Assembly (NCBI RefSeq): GCF_016432865.1 | Contig: NC_067398.1 | Coordinates: 679,892,001 to 679,956,000 of the forward strand | Reading direction: 5' to 3' | DNA: 64,000 nucleotides | Source: Antechinus flavipes | Lineage: Eukaryota | Shown here: positions 3,132-50,072 of the stretch, in pieces | How positions within the stretch are numbered: the stretch's first letter is position 1 | How the letters are laid out: every line of letters begins with the position of its first letter | Position numbers and translations under genes: made by a program | The notes under the pieces: generated by a model | What the model was told of the DNA's origin: nothing | Databases searched by the model: none | The model's input: the letters and a program-made list of their open reading frames with translations, nothing else

Positions 3132-4619
3132 CTGCTCGTTGGGACGGGGCAGGAGCAGGGCTTAGAGTGATCACAATAACTGGATGGGGAAAAGGAAGAA
3201 AAAAAAAAAACAACACCACAATAAATAACAGAAACTATCAATTGATCCAAAGGAAAGAAATAAAATCATAACAAAGAAGAAAGGGGAAGGGGAGGCACCA
3301 AATCAATTCGAAGGGAAAAGATGAGGAGAAAACCAACAGAGATGGGAAAATGGGATGGAACCAACAATGAATGCACACATCTGAAGGAGGGACCCCTCCC
3401 TCAATAGTCCTCTCTTTCTGATTAAAGGGCACTGGTCCCATCCCTCTTCAAACCCAATTTTACTTCCTGGCAGTTTGTGGCTGATCCAGGCACAAACAAA
3501 AACCCAAATAGCAGCCCAGGGCAAATGATAACACTGGACCATCTGGAAACCAGTCCGGATGGTCTCCGATCTCCTGTCCCCAAAAGAACCAGGTGAGGGA
3601 CTCAGGCGCTCCCAATTAGAAAGGAGAGGAGAGGCAAGGATGGGAAGACCAGAATCCCAGATCTGTTGGGGGGCAGGGGTGGCGGAGGCTGGGGGAGTTT
3701 AGGCAGCAACTGGGAGAGAACACCCGGGTTTCCAGAGCCAGGCTTTCCTGACCTGGCTGGAAGAGGAATCCCGCACTTCCAAAAAGGAGATCTCCCCTGT
3801 CCCTGCAAAATTCTGGGGGTCTCCTCCCTTAAGGCTATCGCTGAAATTAAAGATTGCTGAAATTCCTATAGAAGGAAAATCCTTTGCTCGCTCGTTCCCT
3901 CCTCCAAAAACTAGGAGTCAACTTAGTGCGGGGTCTGGGGGATGCTACTCCCCGAAAACTGGACAGAAGGGCATGCTATTTATTGATAAACGCTTGGAAG
4001 CGGAACGGGAAGAGAGGGGGAACCAAAGATGTCACCCCCTAACTCCTCAGGGCTGGAGAACGGAGAGAGCTTAGTCTCCTTCCCACCATGGTCCTAAGTT
4101 TGGAGAGGAAGAGTTTAGGAAAGGGGGAAGGGGGCTGGTAGGATTCCTCCCTCCTTAAGGGCTAAGGAGGAGGAAGGAAGAAAGAGAAGGGAGGTGAGGA
4201 GTCAGGGGAAGGGCTCAGGGGAGTTCCTTGCCCCCCTTCGGGTCAGAAAGGAGGGGACCGGAAGTCTTCCCCCTCCCCCAGGCTTGGAGTACAGCCCTGG
4301 GTCAGGGTGACCCTCTCTCCCCATGGCCAACGGAGGGAGGGGGAGTCTCGGGAGAGAGAGGAACCTGGAGGGGTAAGCCGAGGGGTTCCGGAAGTCAGGG
4401 GCGGAGTTTCGGGTCAGGGGCGGGGCATCTCATCCTGACGCCCCGCCCACCTCCCCTCCCCCTTCTTCCCCTCCCCCCCTTGCAGACTTCCTTACTCGGC
4501 CTGGGCCGCTGCGGGCTGATCTCCAGGTTGAGGTCGATCCTCCGCCGGGCCTCGCGGTTCTCTTGCTTCAGCTTCGCCTCCAGGCGGGACAGTTTCTGCT
4601 CCAGGGAGGACGCCGCCAT
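3132..4619 (-). CDS. MAP2K7: MAP2K7 (MKK7), 5' partial: coding exon 1 (4619-4496, 124 nt) and alternative cassette exon 2 (3179-3132, 48 nt); later exons not found in the window (gene continues past position 1)
   Basis: Exon 1 reads MAASSLEQKLSRLEAKLKQENREARRRIDLNLEISPQRPRP with phase-1 donor A|GTAAGG. The cassette exon reads (I)IVITLSPAPAPSQRA with acceptor ttccccatccag| and donor G|GTACCA, matching the MKK7-gamma insert. Synteny with LRRC8E. Confidence 0.97.
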
Positions 4620-5300
4620 CTTCCCCGCCGCCACCGCCACCGCCGCCGCGCACCTCCCGCCCGTCCGACCCTCAGACAAACACCGCACTGCGCTTGCGCT
4701 GGGATGACCCCACCAGGCCTCCGTCCCACACCGAAGTGCGCATGTCTTTATCTGTCACTGCCCGCCCTTCCCTTTCGGAACACACTGCACCTGCGCTTTC
4801 TGCTTTTTTCCCGCCCCTGTCCTCCCTTCTCGTTCCCCAAAGGCCAACGGTGCGCAAGCGTGGCAGGAAGGCTCGCTCCACCAAGGGATCGCCTCCGGCC
4901 ACGGAGAGCAATTCGTACTACGCCTGCGCGGGGACGCCCATGACCTATCAAAGGGGAGGAACCTTATAGCTACGGGGATAGGTTTCTGGCCCAGAGCGGG
5001 AAGGATGTCCGGGCGCAAGTGTACGCTGGCTTGGCCGTGAAGGAAAAGGGGGACTCCGTGGCGCGTGCGCGCAGGGGGGCGGTGCCGGCTTCTTCCGGTC
5101 GCGCACTTAACGGTCATTTCCAGTTGTTGCTGGGAGTCATTTGGGGTTTCCTCGAGACTTGAGGTGCAGAAAAATGAGACCTTTGGCTCAATAATTTCTG
5201 TAAGAGCCTCGACGAGGCTGGGGGACGAAGCCTGAGCCGGAGACTTCCCTCAAGTCCGGCGAATTCACCTTCCCCTGCGCTCTTGCCTAGGCTAGCATTC
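4230..5300 (-). promoter_or_regulatory. MAP2K7 CpG-island promoter / first-exon region
   Basis: Dense CpG. YY1 motif AAGATGGCGGC overlaps the ATG (4612-4622). NRF1-like TGCGCATG (4737-4744) and GCGCGTGCGC (5061-5070). ETS/GABP CCGGAAG at 4258, 4388 and 5092-5098. Confidence 0.85.
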
Positions 5301-10965: not shown

Positions 10966-11882
10966 ACTACACACCTGTCAGATTGGCTAGAATGACAGGG
11001 AAAGATAATGCGGAATATCGGAGGGGATGTGGGAAAACAGAGGCACTAATACATTGTTGGTGGAATTGTGAATACATCCAACCATTCTGGAGAGCAATTT
11101 GGAACTATGCTCAAAAAGTTATCAAACTTTGATCCAGCAGTGTTACTACTGGGCTTACATCCCAAAGAGATACTAAAGAAGGAAAAGGGACCTGTCTGTG
11201 CAAGAATGTATATGGCAGCCCTCTTTGTAGTGGCCAGAAACTGGAAACTGAGTAGATACCCATCAATTGGAGAATGGCTGAATAAATTGTGGTATATGAA
11301 TATTATGGAATATTATTGTTCGGTAAGAAATGACCAACAGGAGACCTGGAGAGACTTACATGAACTGATGTTGAGTGAAATGAGCAGGACCAGGAGATCA
11401 TTATATACTTCAACAACAATACTATATGATGATCAATTCTAATGGACATGGCCCTCTTCAGCAATGAAATGAACCAAATCAGTTCCAATAGAGCAGTAAT
11501 GAACTGAACCGGCTACACCCAGCGAAAGAACTCTGGGAGATGACTAAGAACCATTATATAGAATTCCCAATCCCTCTATTTTTATCCGCCTGCATTTTTG
11601 ATTTCCTTCACAGGCTAACTGCACTATTTCAGAGTCTGATTCTTTTTGTAAAGCAAAATAATGTTTTGGACATGTATACTTATTCTGTATTTATACTTTA
11701 TACTTTAACATATTTAATTTATGCTTTAACATATTTAATAGGTGTTGGTCATCCTGCCATCTGGGGGGTGGGGGGTGGGGGGAAGGAGGGGAAGAATTGG
11801 AACAAAATGTTTGGCAATTGTCAATGCTATAAAATTACCCATGCATATAATTTGTAAATAAAATGCTATTAATAAAAAAAAA
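10966..11882 (+). mobile_element. 5'-truncated L1 (ORF2 C-terminus plus 3'UTR)
   Basis: ORF 11068-11442 contains L1 ORF2 C-terminal motifs (FDPAVLLLGLHPKE, KLWYMNIMEYY, WRDLHELMLSE); poly(A) tail; TSD gagagggata (10956-10965 / 11895-11904). Confidence 0.93.
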
Positions 11883-14228: not shown

Positions 14229-16433
14229 TAAAAAAAAATTTAATAGCTTTTTATTTACAAGTTATATGCATGGGTAATTTTACAGCATTGACAATTGCCA
14301 ACTTTTGTTCCAATGTTTCCCCTCTTTCCCCCCACTCCCTCCCCTAGATGGCAGGATGACTAATACATGTTAAATATATTAAAGTATAAATTAAATACAA
14401 AATAAGTATACATGTCCAAACCATTATTTTGTTGTACAAAAAGAATCGGACTCTGAAATATTGTACAATTAGCCTGTGAAGGAAATCAAAAAATGCAGGC
14501 GGGCAAAAATATAGGGACTGGGAATTCAATGTAATGGTTCTTAGTCATCTCCCAGAGTTCTTTCCTGGGTGTAGCTGGTTCAGTTCATTACTTCTGTATT
14601 GGAACTGATTTGATTCATCTCATTGTTGAAGAGGGCCACGTCCATCAGAATTGATCATCATATAGTATTGTTGTTGAAGTATATAATGATCTCCTGGTCC
14701 TACTCATTTCACTCAGCATCAGTTCATGTAAGTCTCTCCAGGCCTTTCTGAAATCATCCTGTTGGTCATTTCTTACCGAACAATAATATTCCATAATATT
14801 CATATACCACAATTTATTCAGCCATTCTCCAGCTGATGGGTATCTACTCAGTTTCTGGCCACTACAAAGAGAGCTGCCACAAACATTCTTGCACATACAA
14901 GTCCCTTTCCCTTCTTTAAAATCTCTTTGGGATATAAGCCCAGTAGTAACACTGCTGGATCAAAGGGTATGCAGTTTGATAACTTTTTGAGCATAGTTCC
15001 AAATTGCTCTCCAGAATGGTTGGATGTAGTCACAGTTCCACCAACAATGTATTAGTGTTCCTGTTTTTCCCACATCCCCTCCAACATTCCGCATTATCTT
15101 TCCCTGTCAATCTAGCCAGTGTGACAGGTGTGTAGTGGTATCTCAGAATTGTCTTAATTTGCATTTCTCTGATTAATAATGACTTGGAGCATCTTTCCAT
15201 ATGGCTAGAAATAGTTTCAATTTCTTCGTCTGAGAATTGTCTGTTCATATTTTTTGACCATTTATCAATTGGAGAATGGCTTGATTTCTTATAAGTTAGA
15301 GTCAATTCTCTATATATTTTGGAAATGAGGCCTTTATCAGAATCTTTGACTGTAAAAATGATTTCCCAGTTTATTGTTTTCCTTCTACTCTTGTCTGCAT
15401 TGGTTTTGTTTGTACAAAAACTTTTCAATTTGATATAATCAAAATTTTCTATTTTGTGATCAGTAATGATCTTTAATTCTTCTTTGGTCATAAATTCCTT
15501 CCTCTTCCACAGGTCTGAGAGGTAAACTATCCTAATCTCATTCTTTATGCCTAGATCATGAACCCATTTGGACTTTATCTTGGTGTACGATGTTAAGTGT
15601 GGGTCAATGCTTAGTTTTGGCCATACTAATTTCCAATTTTCCCAGCAATTTTTGTCAAACAGTGAGTTCTTATCACAAAAGCTGGGTCTTTGGGTTTGTT
15701 AAACACTAGAGTATTAAAGTTGTTGACTGTTTTGTCCTTTAAACCTAACCTATTCCACTGATGAACTAATCTATTTCTTAACCAATGGCTAGTCCACCTT
15801 CATTTGATTTTTTTTTCATTAATTCTCTTGAAATTCTTGACTTTTGTTTTTCCATATGAACTTTGTTCTTATTTTTTCTAGGTCATTAAAATAGTTTTTT
15901 GGGAGTCTGATTGGTATAGCGTTAAACAAATAGATTAGTTTAGGTAGTATTGTCATCTTTATTATATTTGCTCGCCCTATCCAAGAGCATTTAATATTTT
16001 TCCAGTTGGTTAGATCAGACTTAATTTGTGTGGAATGTGCTTTGTAATTTTGCTCATAAAGTTTCTGATTTTCCCTTGGCAGATAGATTCCTAAGTATTT
16101 TATACTATCAGTAGTTACTTTAAATGGAATTTCTCTTTGTAACTCTGTTGGATTTTGTTAGTGATATATAAGAACGCTGATGACTTATGTGGGTTTATTT
16201 TGTATCCTGCAATTTTGCTAAAGTTGTGGATTATTTCTAATAACTTTTTAGTAGAATCTTTGGGGTTCTTTAAGTATACCATCATATCATCAGCAAAGAG
16301 TGATAATTTGATTTCCTTATTACTTACTCTAATTCCTTTAATCTATTGATCAACTCTTATTGCCACAGCTAGCATTTCTAATACAATATTGAATAGTAAT
16401 GGTGATAGTGGGCAACCTGGTTTCACTCCTGAT
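14229..16433 (-). mobile_element. 2.2-kb 5'-truncated L1 (ORF2 3' part, frameshifted)
   Basis: Minus-strand ORFs 15030-15491, 14848-15033 and 14645-14896 give ORF2 motifs (IENFDYIKLKSFCT, REMQIKTILRYHYTP); perfect 16-bp TSD gctacaagagattttt at 14213-14228 and 16434-16449. Confidence 0.96.
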
Positions 16434-18900: not shown

Positions 18901-19554
18901 CATATGTGATTTGTTCAAAATATCACAGGGCAATAATCACAAGAGAGAATTTTTTCTTATCTTTATCTTCAGACCATCCTTTTCTTCCCTTTTTTCCTTC
19001 CTCTTCTTAGTGAAGTGAAAAGAAAGATTTGTATGCAAAGTTCAAATCTTGGTTCAAATTCCAACTTACTATATGTTTGATCTTCAATAAATTATTTACC
19101 TTTCTGGTCCTCAGTATTCTCAGCTGTAAAAGGAGGGACTGATACTAAAATAACCTTGAAGGTCTCTTTCAGCTCTAAATATGATGCCATGTCCTGATCA
19201 GACTAAATCTGATAGTGCTAAGGGACTATGCTTCACACATTTGACACATGCAAAGAAGGCAAGTAGAGTGGAGAGGGATCATGAAATCATATAAGAGTGT
19301 GTCAAAGGAAATAGGCTAATCACTCCCTTTAAAATGAAGTATTGTCCTGTAGAAGATATATACTTATTGTGCTTGAGTTCTGATAGAAAAACTATGGCAA
19401 ATTATGGAGGTTACTGTAATAGGGAAGCAGATTTTAGCCCAGTATAACAATTCTCTGACAGTTGATTTAAAAAAAAAAAAAAAAAAGGACTTGGTTGCCT
19501 CAGTAAGTAGTGAATTTCCTAACATGGAGAGACCTTTTAAAAAGCTGGATAACT

Positions 19555-20270
19555 AAACAGTGCATACCCTTTGATCCAGCAGTGTTACTACTGGGCTTAT
19601 ATCCCAAAGAGATCTTAAAGAAGGGAAAGGGACCTGTATGTGCCAAAATGTTTGTGGCAGCCCTTTTTGTAGTGGCTAGAAACTGGAAAATGAATGGATG
19701 CCCATCAATTGGAGAATGGTTGGGTAAATTGTGGTATATGAATGTTATGGAATATTATTGTTCTGTAAGAAATGACCAGCAGGATGAATACAGAGAGGCT
19801 TGGAGAGACTTACATGAATTGATGCTGAATGAAATGAGCAGGACCAGGAGATCATTATACACTTCAACAACAATACTGGATGAGGATGCATTCTGATGGA
19901 AGTGGGTATCTTCAACAAAGAGACGATCTAATTCAGTTCCAATTGATCAATGATGGACAGAATCAGCTACACCCAGAGAAAGAACATTGGGAAATGAATG
20001 TGGACTACTTGCATTTTTGTTTTTCTTCCCAGGTTATTTTTATCTTCTGAATCCTATTTTTCTTGTGCAACAAGAGAACTGTACAGCTCTTTACACATAT
20101 ATTGTATTTAAGATATATTTTAACATGTTTAACATGTATGAGACTGCCTGCCATCTAGGGGAAAGGGTAGAGGGAGGGAAGGGAAAAGTTGGAACAGAAG
20201 TGAGTGCAAGGGACAATGTTGAAAAATTACCCATATATATATTCTATCATTAAAAAGCTATTAAAAAAAA
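19555..20270 (+). mobile_element. 5'-truncated L1 (young-looking)
   Basis: ORF2 C-terminus CIPFDPAVLLLGLYPKE...WRDLHELMLNEMSRTR; TSD aaagctggataact / aaagctagataact (about 19541-19554 / 20271-20284). Confidence 0.93.
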
Positions 20271-21441: not shown

Positions 21442-24288
21442 TTACTCCTCTTCCATTTTCTCCCGCACTTCAGCAGGCAGTCCCTCATACAGAGCCTCCT
21501 CCACCAGCAGCCCTGATTTCTTGAGCCCCCCACAGTTGCCAAGTTCTTCAGGTAAAGCCTCTAACCGGTTACCCTTGAGTTCTAGCCGGCTGAGGGCCTG
21601 CAGCGAAGCCACCCGTGGGGAGAGCTGGCTGAGATGATTGTACCCCAGTAATAGCGTCCTCAGCTTTTGGCAGAAAAAGAGTTCTTCCGGGAGCCCCTCC
21701 AGGGCATTGTAGGAAACAGCAAGATGCTGTAAGTTTTGGAGGTAGCTTACCTCTTGGGGCAAAGAGCGTAAGCCATTGTGAGAAATGTCAAGCAAGCGCA
21801 AGTTGGTGCAGAAACAGAGTTGAGATGGCAGGGTCTCCAATTTGTTGTGACTAAGGTACAACTGCTCTAAACCCTTGAGTTTGCGAATGTGTTCGGGAAC
21901 ATAGGCTATCTGGTTGTGCCATAACTTGAGAGTGACCAGCTTGCGACAATGTTGAAAGCTTAGGATCTCCTCGATGGAGCGGAGGTGGTTGTCCTTCAGG
22001 TCTAGCTCCTGTAACGCAGCCAAGCTAAAGACAGCATGGGGTATCCTCTCCAGCCCACATCCCACCAGCTCTAACTCCCTCAGAGCCATGAGCTTCTTTA
22101 ACCCATTGAGGGTCAGCAGCCGGGCCCCGTCATTGTGGATGCTGAGCCGCTGCAGGTGCCCGGCCACATCGGTCACACTGGGGGGCACTTTGCCTGCATT
22201 GCTTCTCAGGGAGAGGCTCTTGAGGAGCTTCAGCTCTTTGAGGCTCTCCAGATTAGCTGCCCGGCTAAGTTCTGCGGGGAAAAGACCTTCAAGATGAAGC
22301 TCTTCCAGGCCCCGGAGCCCAAACACCCACAGAGGCACTTCTCGAAGCTCCTCACACTTCACCCTCACCACCTTGAGTCGGTCCCTCAAGAAAACAAAGG
22401 AGGAAAAGGGCAGTTTGGCCGGGGAGTGCAGCAGACTGAGCTCTTCCAGGTGGACCAGCTGGGACAGGGTCGGAGGAAAGGTGATGTCGCAGATGGCCTC
22501 CAGCTTGAGAGCCTCGATCTCGCTCAGCTCAAAGACTGTGTCAGGGAGACCAGGCAGCATGCAGAGGGCCAGCTCCAGCCGCTCTCGCCCGTTGCGCTGG
22601 AGCTTCTGGCGCAGTTTCTCTGCTGTCCACTCGTGGTTGAGGTTGAGCTGCTTGAGCCGGCTCTCACTGACCTCCGAGAGGAAGACGGCAAAGCGTTTGG
22701 AGTAGAGAGAATCATATTGGTCAATGAGGTGGAGCATGAAAGCAAAGTCGTTCTTGACATCGGGGATGTCCCCCATGCCTGTCTCCTCCCTCACTGAGCA
22801 GAAAGAATACTCCTTGAGGGGCCGGTGGAAAAGCCAATAGAGTGTGTAGAGACAAGTGAGGCCATAGACACACACGAAGGAGATGTAGCAGAAGGCCAGC
22901 TTGGCGAAGAGGTGAGCCTTGGTGTGGTTGCAGCAGAAGCTGGCGTAGCCCGTGACTTCGGCCGTCTCCACCTGGCAGGCCACCAAGAAGCTGATCTTCT
23001 CCACATAGATGACGTTGTAGATCAGAATCGCCAGAAATTTGCAGACCTTGAGCACTGTCTGACGGATGTACATGGTGTATAAGATGTCGCCCTCCTCCAC
23101 GTGCACCCGGAACTTCTTCACCTTCTCAAACAGAGCTTTGGCCTGCTCTCCCTCCTTTTTGTCCAGCAGGGTGACAGCCGGGGGTTCCATCACCACCTTC
23201 TCTGGCTCCGTCAGCACCTTCTCTGACTCACCTGCCTTTCCCGTCCCCACGATGGCCGTGGCCGGCACCCGTCCCGAGGCGCCCTTGTGGTTCTCACCAG
23301 ACACCTCGGACAGGGCCCGAGTTGTCCACGGGGAGTCGAAGCATTTGCCCAAGATGGAAATGAAGTGCTCGATCTTGGAGCTGGTTCCGGGGAATTTGAA
23401 CCAGAAGCTTGTGCAGACCATGAAGATGAGAGTGTGGATGACAACCAGGTAGGGGAAGTACTTGGCATACCAGTGCAGGGCGGTCTCGTAGCAGAGCTGG
23501 TTGATGAAGCTATATTGTTGTAAGTCCAGATTGTTCTTGAGACCGCTGAGCTCCCGAAGGTCCTCTGAATCCCCAGAGATTGCCCGGGGCAGCGCCCCAC
23601 AAGGCGTCTCTGATAGATTCTCTCGGGGTACATGGCTGGGCAAGCAGATGATCTTGTCCTGAGTTACCTGAGATTTGGGGAGATAGGAACAGAAAGGATA
23701 AATATGCCTAGGGAGGCGGATGGGAAGAGCCTGGCTTCCAGCCCTGCTTTGGTGGCCAGAACTATTCTGTGCCTCAGTTTCTCCTATTGTAAATATAGTC
23801 CCTCCCCACTTTGGCTCTCCCTTCAAAGATTTTACAAAACACACAATTAAAAAGCTCTGTAACTTTAAGGAATTCCTGGAGTGCCGACACTCCTGCTGAT
23901 CACATACAGGTTTGCCAAGTTTTGGGTCCTAGCCTCTAAAAGAACCCTATACTCAAAAGGGATCCCAGAGGATCATCTCTCACATCTTCAATTCAACCTT
24001 ACTCTGCCTTGGCCTTGGCAGCTGCCTTAATGTTCCCTTTTTCTCCCCAATAAAGATCTTCTCTCTCTTCCCCCAAGACTCACCTCCAGCCCACCTTTGG
24101 GATTTTCCCAGTCTCTTTTCATGGTCTGTCCAAAGGACTGGGATCCTCACCTGCAGGGTACAGCCAAAAACCCCGATCATGAGCATGGCCACTGTGATGT
24201 ATTCAGCTAGCACATCCCACCACGGCTTCAGCACTTTGAATGCGGGCTGCTGCTCTGTAAATTGCTTGAATTCAGCCACTGGGATCAT
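21442..24288 (-). CDS. LRRC8E: LRRC8E volume-regulated anion channel subunit, 787 aa; join(24288-24151, 23667-21442)
   Basis: [30 protein letters not shown]...GCTLQ|GTGAGG, then acceptor tctcag|[10 protein letters not shown]; transmembrane segments and C-terminal LRR array; 138+2226=2364 nt, in frame. Confidence 0.98.
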
Positions 24289-42527: not shown

Positions 42528-47855
<5,328 letters not shown>

Positions 47856-48171
47856 GATGCCCTTGTCCCATCCATCCAAAGGACCATTGTGCCCTCTGAA
47901 CTGAAGGCCCCAGCCTGATACCTGCCTCTTGCCTGTTTTCCCACCCGCAGTTCTGTAGCAGGGGGAATTAGGCAAAGGGATAGTCGTGATGATGTTCTAG
48001 CTTCCTAACATCCTTCCATCTGAGTCCTGGAAGGTCTTGGCCTGACCAGCTTCTTGATTCCCATGTATTGTATGTATGTATGTTGTAGATTGCCATTGCT
48101 GGTTTGCTCCTGTGACCTCTAGCTTCTGTGGGTGGCGTGCCTGTGTGTTTTCTAAGGCCTTTTTAGTTTGT

Positions 48172-48177
48172 AATAAA
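48172..48177 (+). terminator. PRR36 polyadenylation signal AATAAA
   Basis: First AATAAA after the stop (about 320 nt), followed by a GT-rich element (gtggggttgtagttgctgtttt). Confidence 0.75.
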
Positions 48178-48305
48178 GATGAGACAGTGGGGTTGTAGTT
48201 GCTGTTTTAGGGGATTGGGCAGTCCAAAACTTTTGGATCTGGGGACTGCCTCCAAGTCCTGCAATTTCTTCTGCTGATTTTGGTGAACAGGTGGAGAACA
48301 AGGCT

Positions 48306-50072
48306 TTAGGGACAGTTTTCTCCCTTCTCCCTGGGGCTCAGGACCCCCAGGGAAGTGCCCGGTGGCTCTTTGGGGCAGGATTCCTGCAGGGGTGGGCACT
48401 TTGGCCTCCCAGGCAACGGCCGGCTCACCCCATGCTGCCGACAGTGAGTGAGCAGGTTGGAGCTCTGGCTGAAGGATTTTCCACATACTCCACAGTGATG
48501 GGGCTTTTCTCCTGTGGAAAGGTAGCCCCGAGCTTGGTGTAAATGGGGGAGCTGGGCAAGGATCATATGGAGGGGCATGGGGTTGAGGAAGGGGGACTAT
48601 AGAGGCATGGTGGTGAAAACCAGTTGTCAAAACTGGGGAGTTATGGACGTATATTAATGGGGAATCTAGTGGGGAGATGTAGAATTCAGATGGCTAGTCG
48701 GTAGGGAAAATGAAGACAATGGAGAGTAATGAAGGGGCTGGAGGAGCCATGAGGATGAATAGGAGGCCTGGCCGAAATATCTCTGGGGAGAGATGAGACT
48801 GACAATGAGCTGGGCTCCCTTCCAACTTCCCTCCTGGAGGGGAAGGGCTATTGCCGGGTAGGAGGGGATGGGGGCGGGCAGACCTCCTGCCGTTTTCCCC
48901 AGACCCCTCGGTGGCGGGTCCTGCAGCCGGGCTGCTCACTCCCAGCCCCTCCCCCCAGCCCTTTTCCTCCTCCTCTTCCCGGGCCGCACCGGTGTGGGTG
49001 AACGTGTGCTTCTTCATGTCGGATTTCTGGTGGAAGCGCTTGGTGCAGAAGGGGCAGGGATGGGGCCGCGTGCCCGAATGGATAAGCAGGTGTGTGGACA
49101 GAGTGGAGGAGCGCCGGAAGCTCTTCCCGCACACGCCGCAGGGGAACAGTCTCTCCTGGGGGCAGGACGGGAGCCGTGGAAGGAGGGACCAGGCTGGGCT
49201 TCCTCCATACCGTCCCATCCCACCCTAGAGGCAGAACATGGGGCTGGGGCAGCAGCCAAGTAGCTTCTGGCCCTTCGCCCCACCCCCACCCCCCCTAAGT
49301 CCTCCTGGGTTACCTTGAATTGATGAGGGTGCTGTGCTGTGGGTGGTGGCAGCGGTAGCTGTGGCTGCAGGTTTGGGGCAGTAACTGCTGTCGGGGGCGG
49401 GGGCTGGGGCTGAGGCTGGGGCTGGGGGCAGTGGCCATCCCAGGAGAGGCCAGCTGGCCCCTGGAGCCCTGGGGTTAGGTCAAATGAATCCAATCACTAT
49501 GAGGTTCCTAGAAGGTGACCCCTCACAAACTGAGGCCTGAGCCCATAGGCCTCCAACTTCCACTTCCCCTAGCCCAGGAGAGCTCTTACCAAAGAGGTCA
49601 GCCTCTGCCTGCGCAGAGGACCCCAGAGAGGAGCCGGCTTCAGGGTTGGGGGACAGGGGCCTCTCAGCCCATGGGCCTCCAAGCCTCCCCACAGAGAGGG
49701 CTGGGTTCCCTGGAGTAAAGCCTATACAAAAAGAACTCATTCTTTGAGAACTGTGAGAAAACCAGATATTCTATTCCCTGACTCTGCTGATGTAAGGTGT
49801 CCTGGTTCCTGTCACCCCCACCCCAACCCTTGCCCCAAACACATCCAAGATTCTTAAATTTAATTTGAATTGGCCATTTCTCCTGTTCTCACTTTCTCAG
49901 CTCCATGGCCTTTCCCTCTCTCCACAACTTGGGCACCCTAGTACCCAGATCTTCCATGAGAGCCCTGCAGAATTCTGGAGCTGGGGATCTTCAGAAAGGA
50001 CAGGCCATACTTACCAATCACCTTTTTTCTTCCAGAGGTTCTTCTGCTTCTTACTAGGAAGGATCGAGGCAT
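48306..50072 (-). CDS. GFI1-family SNAG/C2H2 zinc-finger repressor (GFI1/GFI1B paralog), 238 aa; join(50072-50015, 49721-49590, 49468-49314, 49155-48990, 48511-48306)
   Basis: [15 protein letters not shown]; ZF3-4 [56 protein letters not shown]; ZF5 [26 protein letters not shown]. Donors GTAAGT/GTAAGA/GTAACC/GTGCGG; phases 1,1,0,1; 58+132+155+166+206=717 nt with no internal stop. The exon-3 acceptor is the weakest call. Confidence 0.9.

Follow-up and report, generated by a model that had tools for sequence, protein, structure and literature searches.

In a 2020 review, the GFI family consists of two genes, whose zinc fingers (ZF) 3-5 bind an AATC core while ZF1, ZF2, and ZF6 mediate protein contacts (PMC7649360). 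The same review describes a short GFI1B isoform without ZF1-2 that is still a transcriptional repressor (PMC7649360). A SNAG motif is also found in SNAI1, where it has an arginine at position 8 (R8), and mutation of R8 abolished LSD1 binding (PMC5066116). The gene described here lies on the minus strand (50072..48306) of a stretch of 64,000 nucleotides (nt) from Antechinus flavipes (NCBI RefSeq assembly GCF_016432865.1, contig NC_067398.1, positions 679,892,001 to 679,956,000 of the forward strand), which is termed the window below. This gene probably represents a third, functional member of the family of GFI1 and GFI1B, pared in mammals to a SNAG motif, a disordered linker, and ZF3-5. An earlier note, made from these letters alone, had proposed that it lacks the ZF1-2 exon and is a "hard-wired" equivalent of the short GFI1B isoform, and what that note says of the finger roles and of the isoform agrees with the review.

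A coding region without the ZF1-2 exon

Three-frame translation and inspection of splice sites give a gene of five coding exons with a product of 238 amino acids (aa). This protein has an N-terminal SNAG motif and a low-complexity linker rich in Pro and Gln, and then three C2H2 fingers before a tail of 41 aa. Coding exon 1 (50072-50015, minus strand as are all exons of the gene, 58 nt) encodes the SNAG motif and ends in a phase 1 donor, G^gtaagt, where ^ marks the exon border. Coding exon 2 (49721-49590, 132 nt) encodes linker, as does the Pro/Gln-rich coding exon 3 (49468-49314, 155 nt), whose 3′ end reads CAA TTC AAG^GTAACC (HQFK). Coding exon 4 (49155-48990, 166 nt) starts ccccag^GAG AGA CTG TTC CCC TGC (ERLFPC) and contains both the ZF3 homologue (49078-49140) and the ZF4 homologue (48994-49056). 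Finally, coding exon 5 (48511-48306, 206 nt with the stop) contains the ZF5 homologue (48432-48494), after which no finger pattern is present; the 41-aa tail encoded there (48309-48431) is a decayed ZF6, and the ZF6 found at this position in the alligator orthologue is intact.

Every intron of the Antechinus gene has GT..AG borders. The model is a 100% match to RefSeq XP_051828474.1, which carries the name "zinc finger protein 628-like", so the NCBI pipeline arrived independently at the same exon structure. The gene span with 3 kb on each side shows no differences from Antechinus flavipes GCA_016432865.2.

Intron 3 (49313-49156, minus strand, 158 nt, GT..AG) is the expected site of the 138-nt ZF1b-ZF2 exon of GFI1 and GFI1B. 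Exons 1-3 sum to 345 nt, and therefore this intron is in phase 0 on both sides. Exon 3 corresponds in position to the GFI1 exon that ends in CxxCxK, yet it has no CxxC. The earlier note had placed the end of exon 3 at HQFK^GTAACC and the next acceptor at ^ERLFPC, 158 nt away and in phase 0, and translation and splice sites confirm these coordinates exactly. Its size of about 138 nt for the ZF1-2 exon also holds, as short GFI1B isoforms lack a segment of 46 aa, which corresponds to 138 nt. The absence of a ZF1b-ZF2 exon was borne out by searches of the whole 64 kb for ZF1-2 or ZF6 remnants, in which tblastn with GFI1 ZF1-2 (54 aa) and ZF6 at E ≤100 matched only the ZF3-5 exons. The junction itself is homologous to the CxxCxK^ERSF junction of the short GFI1B isoform (p32).

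An in-frame alternative acceptor, ctctag^GG, which the earlier note does not mention, is found at 49224 on the minus strand, and its use would extend exon 4 by 23 aa (49156-49224). The wombat RefSeq isoforms X1 and X3 (P0292 and P0291) contain a homologous 23-aa insert ahead of exon 4. In the same region, the frame is open in Dromiciops and the AG is displaced by 2 nt in the Tasmanian devil. This insert contains no finger and therefore does not affect the conclusion that the protein has three fingers.

The orthologous intron 3 is 152 nt long in two devil assemblies, 145 nt in Dromiciops, and 197 nt in platypus, and its GT..AG borders and 0/0 phase are retained in these species and Antechinus despite the varying length. 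In addition, three fingers and the junction ..K^E(R/K)LFPC occur in annotated orthologues from Antechinus, devil, Sminthopsis, wombat, Petaurus, Trichosurus, Dromiciops, Gracilinanus, and platypus. Because the same short intron 3 is present in the genomes of other species, the exon loss is real and not an assembly error: Antechinus, devil, Dromiciops, and platypus all have genomes that lack the ZF1b-ZF2 exon. This also excludes an assembly deletion of 49156-49313, which the earlier note had named as a finding that would overturn its reading.

It might still be supposed that a real ZF1-2 exon was collapsed out of the assembly or is located elsewhere, as intron 3 is G-rich and of low complexity, and a repeat in neighbouring exon 3 (49385-49438) was skipped when contigs were placed. 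Such an artefact is extremely improbable given the equally short intron in the two devil assemblies, Dromiciops, and platypus and the negative tblastn result, and the 64-kb window is free of N. Moreover, a 7.4-kb contig of sequencing run X7 (depth ~25) crosses the gene with zero differences in 49156-49313, although the kind of this run is not on record and the contig may derive from the assembly's own sample.

Family identity, neighbourhood, and stepwise finger loss

The three fingers are recognised as Pfam zf-C2H2, and the protein contains only three C-x2-C...H-x3-H units instead of six. The recognition helices have R-S-T-T, Q-S-D-K, and Q-S-N-T at positions -1/2/3/6, which the earlier note had equated with those of GFI1; indeed, all 12 residues match GFI1, and they match GFI1B and every orthologue as well. 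Identity of ZF3-5 to GFI1/GFI1B is 77-79% (79% to GFI1 over 81 residues), and exon 4 is ~80% identical to GFI1/GFI1B ZF3-4 from sharks to mammals. The top database matches of the gene product are all Gfi-type proteins. Among structures, the best single-stretch match is PDB 2kmk, an 82-aa chain of Gfi-1 ZF3-5 alone, which is aligned end to end (residues 2-80, 138.9 bits with the devil orthologue; 105.6 bits with exon 4 of the window).

The SNAG motif begins MPRSFLV, with P2, R3, S4, and F5 in place, and it has an arginine at position 8. It is kept in marsupials, platypus, alligator, caecilians, and fish, and position 8 is arginine in every orthologue from mammals, alligator, and caecilians. Exon 1 shows 93-97% identity to its counterparts in devil and Dromiciops. 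A search of PDB with the 24-aa SNAG peptide gave no match.

In a maximum likelihood tree of ZF3-6, the mammalian genes form a clade (support 100/97) that is sister to alligator (94/88) and then to an ostariophysan fish group (91/83). Mammals, alligator, and this fish group stand apart from GFI1 (83/82), and the caecilian genes join them with weak support. The mammalian branch is long, with 0.66 + 0.46 changes per column, which reflects far faster evolution than that of GFI1 and GFI1B.

The order of genes around the locus is also conserved. An EVI5-family gene, this gene, and a convergent PRR36 follow one another in devil, Petaurus, Dromiciops, and platypus, and an EVI5-family gene is found immediately upstream in alligator. 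Within the window, its neighbours are coiled-coil exons of an EVI5-family gene (minus strand, from 57.5 kb) and PRR36 (44119-47855, plus strand), which is proline-rich and has a BTBD8_C domain at its end. Farther out are a single-exon LRRC8 gene (21442-23844, minus strand) with an 800-aa open reading frame (ORF) and Pannexin_like and LRR domains, and the first coding exon of what we take to be MAP2K7, by its likeness to the human N-terminus (4398-4754, minus strand; MAASSLEQKLSRLEAKLKQENREAR).

GFI1 adjoins EVI5, and the human paralogous block is LRRC8B-D / BTBD8 / GFI1 / EVI5, which is paralleled here by the block MAP2K7 - LRRC8 - PRR36 - gene - EVI5L. The assignment of the neighbouring EVI5-family gene to EVI5L follows from synteny with PRR36, the LRRC8 gene, and MAP2K7. 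Taken together, sequence and position identify the gene as a third GFI-family paralogue, a putative ohnolog located between EVI5L and PRR36. That it might be the marsupial GFI1 itself is ruled out by the neighbours PRR36, LRRC8, and MAP2K7 and by the separate clade.

In the PRR36-like gene of the window, proline/serine-rich repeats that are nearly identical to one another form a long array (44119-47366, plus strand), where the GC skew is strongly negative at -0.61. The window also contains L1-like ORF2 fragments at 11068-11442, 15030-15491, and 19510-19896.

Outside mammals, proteins named "Gfi-1b-like" in alligator (XP_025048534.1, KYO18862.1), caecilians (Rhinatrema, Geotrypetes, Microcaecilia), and fish (Leuciscus, Misgurnus, Chanos) are probably orthologous to this gene. 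They have in common with it the signatures PCPFC and HxCGVCG, a further motif, clustering in the tree, and an EVI5-family or TGFBR3(L)-like neighbour, but differ in that they retain ZF6 plus remnants of ZF1 or ZF2. For fish and caecilians, this probable orthology is based on moderate tree support and a single neighbouring gene. In Leuciscus and Rhinatrema, the next gene is a TGFBR3-type ZP-domain gene on the opposite strand, which encodes 813 aa with TGFBR3_N in the fish and 487 aa with ZP only in the caecilian; such neighbours would fit a TGFBR3L/EVI5L paralogon.

The gene is thus distributed among monotremes, marsupials, and alligators, and probably caecilians and some fish, and no eutherian orthologue was found among proteins 98-313 aa long. 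When eight orthologues served as the profile for a further search, three marsupial entries (Dromiciops, Trichosurus, and a Sminthopsis isoform) and two caecilian proteins were added; this search was swamped by poly-zinc-finger proteins because many fingers sum in the score.

This one orthologous gene is called ZNF628-like, ZNF836-like, ZNF358-like, ZNF48-like, KLF16, or Gfi-1b-like, depending on the species, and some of the models appear incomplete. In platypus, a canonical SNAG exon with the donor ^gtaagt (L002:9632-9710) is located ~80 nt upstream of the ATG in XP_028906965.2 / P0071. Platypus models begin MPRPIRR.. or MPRILVF.., while the UniRef model P0293 does include the SNAG exon, and the platypus RefSeq N-terminus looks mis-annotated. 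Similarly, Dromiciops has a SNAG exon 93% identical to exon 1 of the window (L007:7758-7815) that is unused in its RefSeq model P0122, which goes under the name "Krueppel-like factor 16" and starts with 80 unrelated aa.

Comparison of these genes suggests how the fingers were probably lost. In the alligator gene, a SNAG exon is present, as is one that ends in ..CCNGCDK^gtaaga, the CxxCxK half of ZF1. The next exon, of 105 nt (GLQLSC...GKTQ), has no zinc-ligand pattern and ends in Q as does the GFI1 ZF2 exon, and it is followed by an exon with ZF3-4 and one with ZF5-6 in which ZF6 is intact. In the fish genes, ZF1 is apparently intact and ZF2 is gone, and the caecilian genes have a single degenerate finger. 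The 145-197 nt of intron 3 in mammals have a counterpart of ~820 nt in alligator.

In the most likely course, ZF1 and ZF2 lost their zinc ligands first, giving the alligator state of CxxCxK plus a finger-less 105-nt exon, after which the vestigial exon was deleted in the mammalian stem, leaving one short intron of 145-197 nt. ZF6 probably decayed in place through substitution, as suggested by comparing the alligator ZF6 region, HRPFACPRCPQSFQRKVDLRRH, with the decayed Antechinus tail. Because the platypus gene also has three fingers, the losses of the ZF1-2 exon and of ZF6 predate the monotreme-therian split, which supplies the date that the earlier note had hoped to obtain from aligned orthologues.

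Selection, transcription, and proposed function

The ratio of nonsynonymous to synonymous change (dN/dS) was estimated by the Nei-Gojobori method among Antechinus, devil, Dromiciops, platypus, and alligator. For ZF3-5, dN/dS is 0.02 between Antechinus and Dromiciops (11 synonymous changes and 1 nonsynonymous), 0.11 between devil and Dromiciops, 0.04-0.07 between marsupials and platypus, and 0.11-0.14 between marsupials and alligator; for the Antechinus gene itself the last two comparisons give 0.05 and 0.11. The corresponding values are 0.31-0.47 for exons 1-3 and 0.2-0.8 for the tail. Purifying selection acts strongly on the codons of ZF3-5. Exon 3 is 155 nt long in Antechinus, 143 nt in devil, and 149 nt in Dromiciops, and these lengths all differ by multiples of 3.

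Transcription was examined in Logan contigs from a close relative of Antechinus flavipes, in which intron sequence matches the devil locus. The spliced joint of intron 1 (50014->49720) is found in run X5 at the exact boundaries of the model, that of intron 2 (49589->49467) in runs X1 and X5, and that of intron 4 (48989->48510) in runs X2 and X5. The gene is transcribed, spliced at introns 1, 2, and 4, and under purifying selection.

It has been noted above that PRR36 is convergent with the gene. Its stop is at 47855 with an AATAAA near 48173, and record 14 of devil RNA contig X5 extends from exon 5 past 48000. The two genes probably overlap at their 3′ ends (47500-48510). In the Trichosurus model P0129, a splice at CRQHG^gtgagc (~48435) is followed by sequence from the opposite strand of the last PRR36 exon.

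The sequence of the protein suggests how it may function. Its three fingers, which carry the GFI1 specificity residues, would dock on AATC-core sites, and the SNAG motif (P2 R3 S4 F5, with R8 as in SNAI1) would enter the LSD1 cleft and thereby bring LSD1-CoREST to the site. Without ZF1, ZF2, and ZF6, the partner contacts assigned to those fingers would be impossible. We infer binding to TAAATCAC(A/T)GCA and repression via LSD1-CoREST, which would make the protein a partner-independent repressor. It may also compete with GFI1 and GFI1B wherever it is co-expressed with them. A count of GFI1-type sites (AAATCACWGC with one mismatch) gave 10 matches compared to 9.4 expected, and so no sign of autoregulatory sites.

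Several observations weigh against this proposal. Lys8 of GFI1B p32 is replaced by Arg in this protein, and 17 of the 81 ZF3-5 residues differ from GFI1, some of them beyond the canonical contacts (K13R, D27G, Y31H, I75L); such non-contact substitutions could alter affinity or specificity. In addition, the joint between exons 3 and 4 is not seen in the RNA contigs aligned to the gene, and the X1 and X2 devil contigs run unspliced across the exon 4 acceptor. Together with the long mammalian branch, these points could indicate a functional gene that is not a GFI1-like AATC repressor, and instead has another DNA specificity, sequesters LSD1 or acts as a dominant negative, or makes a SNAG-only peptide via retention of intron 3, read-through of which shifts the frame to a stop ahead of any finger.

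We consider a function of this other kind unlikely. The 12 canonical specificity residues are constant from fish to marsupials, and a finger dN/dS of 0.02-0.11 would be senseless if the fingers were untranslated. Unspliced reads in X1 and X2 are not peculiar to intron 3, since both runs extend over introns 1, 2, and 4 as well and probably contain pre-mRNA or DNA. In X5, the depth in intron 3 is zero, with coverage of exon 4 and of exon 3 in its 5′ portion. The X5 contigs end ~22 nt and ~57 nt before the exon 3-4 junction, beside the skipped repeat in exon 3. Intron 3 splicing is thus supported indirectly by splice sites and a phase that are conserved in four species despite length variation, by selection on the downstream fingers, and by the RefSeq models.

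It may also be asked whether the gene is a decaying relic that is losing fingers 1, 2, and 6 on the way to becoming a pseudogene, as may have happened in eutherians. Parts have indeed been lost stepwise across vertebrates, constraint on the tail is weak (dN/dS as high as 0.79), and no eutherian orthologue turned up in the protein set given above. This interpretation is very improbable and is already largely refuted by the reading frame, which is intact in at least nine marsupials and in platypus, by the conserved SNAG motif (the unannotated platypus exon included) and the exon 3 indels in multiples of 3, and by finger constraint over more than 300 million years and spliced transcripts in devil. 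A functional repressor of the GFI1 type, with three fingers, therefore remains the favoured interpretation of the locus.

Significance and comparison with known systems

Literature searches for a third GFI paralogue returned Gfi1-Cre papers and unrelated matches, and no description of one. The gene is already in databases under misleading names, and no paper describing it was found. That one orthologous gene carries six different names is a lesson for annotation.

Earlier work on what ZF1, ZF2, and ZF6 do has relied on deletion constructs and a single splice isoform. This gene adds a natural long-term experiment, in which a family member has existed on SNAG and ZF3-5 alone for at least ~180 million years. 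Because its finger codons have long been under strong constraint, the three-finger core appears to be a sufficient functional unit. The gene could thus serve as a clean reagent to separate DNA-directed from partner-directed GFI functions, and it raises the question of how GFI1-type regulation is divided among three genes in non-eutherian mammals.

A broader evolutionary scheme can be sketched, in which vertebrates inherited three GFI genes and the third shed its contact fingers stepwise; in monotremes and marsupials it would persist as a minimal repressor of SNAG and ZF3-5 that does constitutively what eutherian GFI1B does by exon skipping. Eutherians would have lost the gene, and a p32-type isoform may have taken over its role. 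GFI1B entries with the p32-type junction CxxCxK^ERSF are all eutherian (36/36 within the protein set used), and no orthologue of the gene was found among eutherian proteins of 98-313 aa. We regard this scheme as doubtful and rate it low, since sampling and annotation bias could explain both eutherian patterns.

Sminthopsis GFI1B isoform X3 (P0267) has an unrelated 33-aa segment at the place of the p32 junction, and a stickleback protein (P0095) reads CPLCSK^ERTFDC. In Acipenser sinensis, the C-terminus of the EVI5 coiled coil is fused to GFI1 ZF3-6 exactly before ERSFDC (P0264). This fusion is probably an annotation read-through between adjacent EVI5 and GFI1, and its join marks the GFI1 exon boundary that precedes ERSF.

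The closest known counterpart of the protein is GFI1B p32 (isoform 2), which likewise combines SNAG with ZF3-5 and lacks the ZF1b-ZF2 segment. The two have the same phase 0 codon boundary, HQFK^ERLFPC here compared to CLKCNK^ERSFEC in p32, and each lacks the same segment of 46 aa (138 nt). However, p32 arises by exon skipping from a six-finger gene, whereas in the present case the genome itself has no such exon. Moreover, p32 retains the CxxCxK half-finger, ZF6, and Lys8, none of which is found in this protein, and its linker shows no sequence relation to that of p32 and is far shorter (238 aa compared to 284 aa for the whole protein). Going by the title of a 2012 report by Laurent that is cited in PMC7649360, dimethylation within the SNAG domain is said to drive LSD1-CoREST recruitment by GFI1B p32, and the residue is reportedly Lys8. 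The "hard-wired" short GFI1B of the earlier note is therefore apt for the change at the level of the exon, with the same junction and the same 46 aa, and fails for equivalence of the proteins.

Full-length GFI1 and GFI1B resemble the gene in SNAG motif, finger sequence, exon boundaries, and paralogous neighbourhood, but they have six fingers compared to three here, and K8/K10/K11 in place of R8/R10/R11. SNAI1 shares with it an overall plan in which an N-terminal SNAG motif with Arg8 (MPRSFLVR...) precedes a short array of C2H2 fingers at the C-terminus. The fingers of SNAI1, however, belong to another family and bind the E-box, and its match to exon 4 in PDB is weak (3w5k, E 1.5e-10) compared to that of Gfi-1 (2.7e-30).

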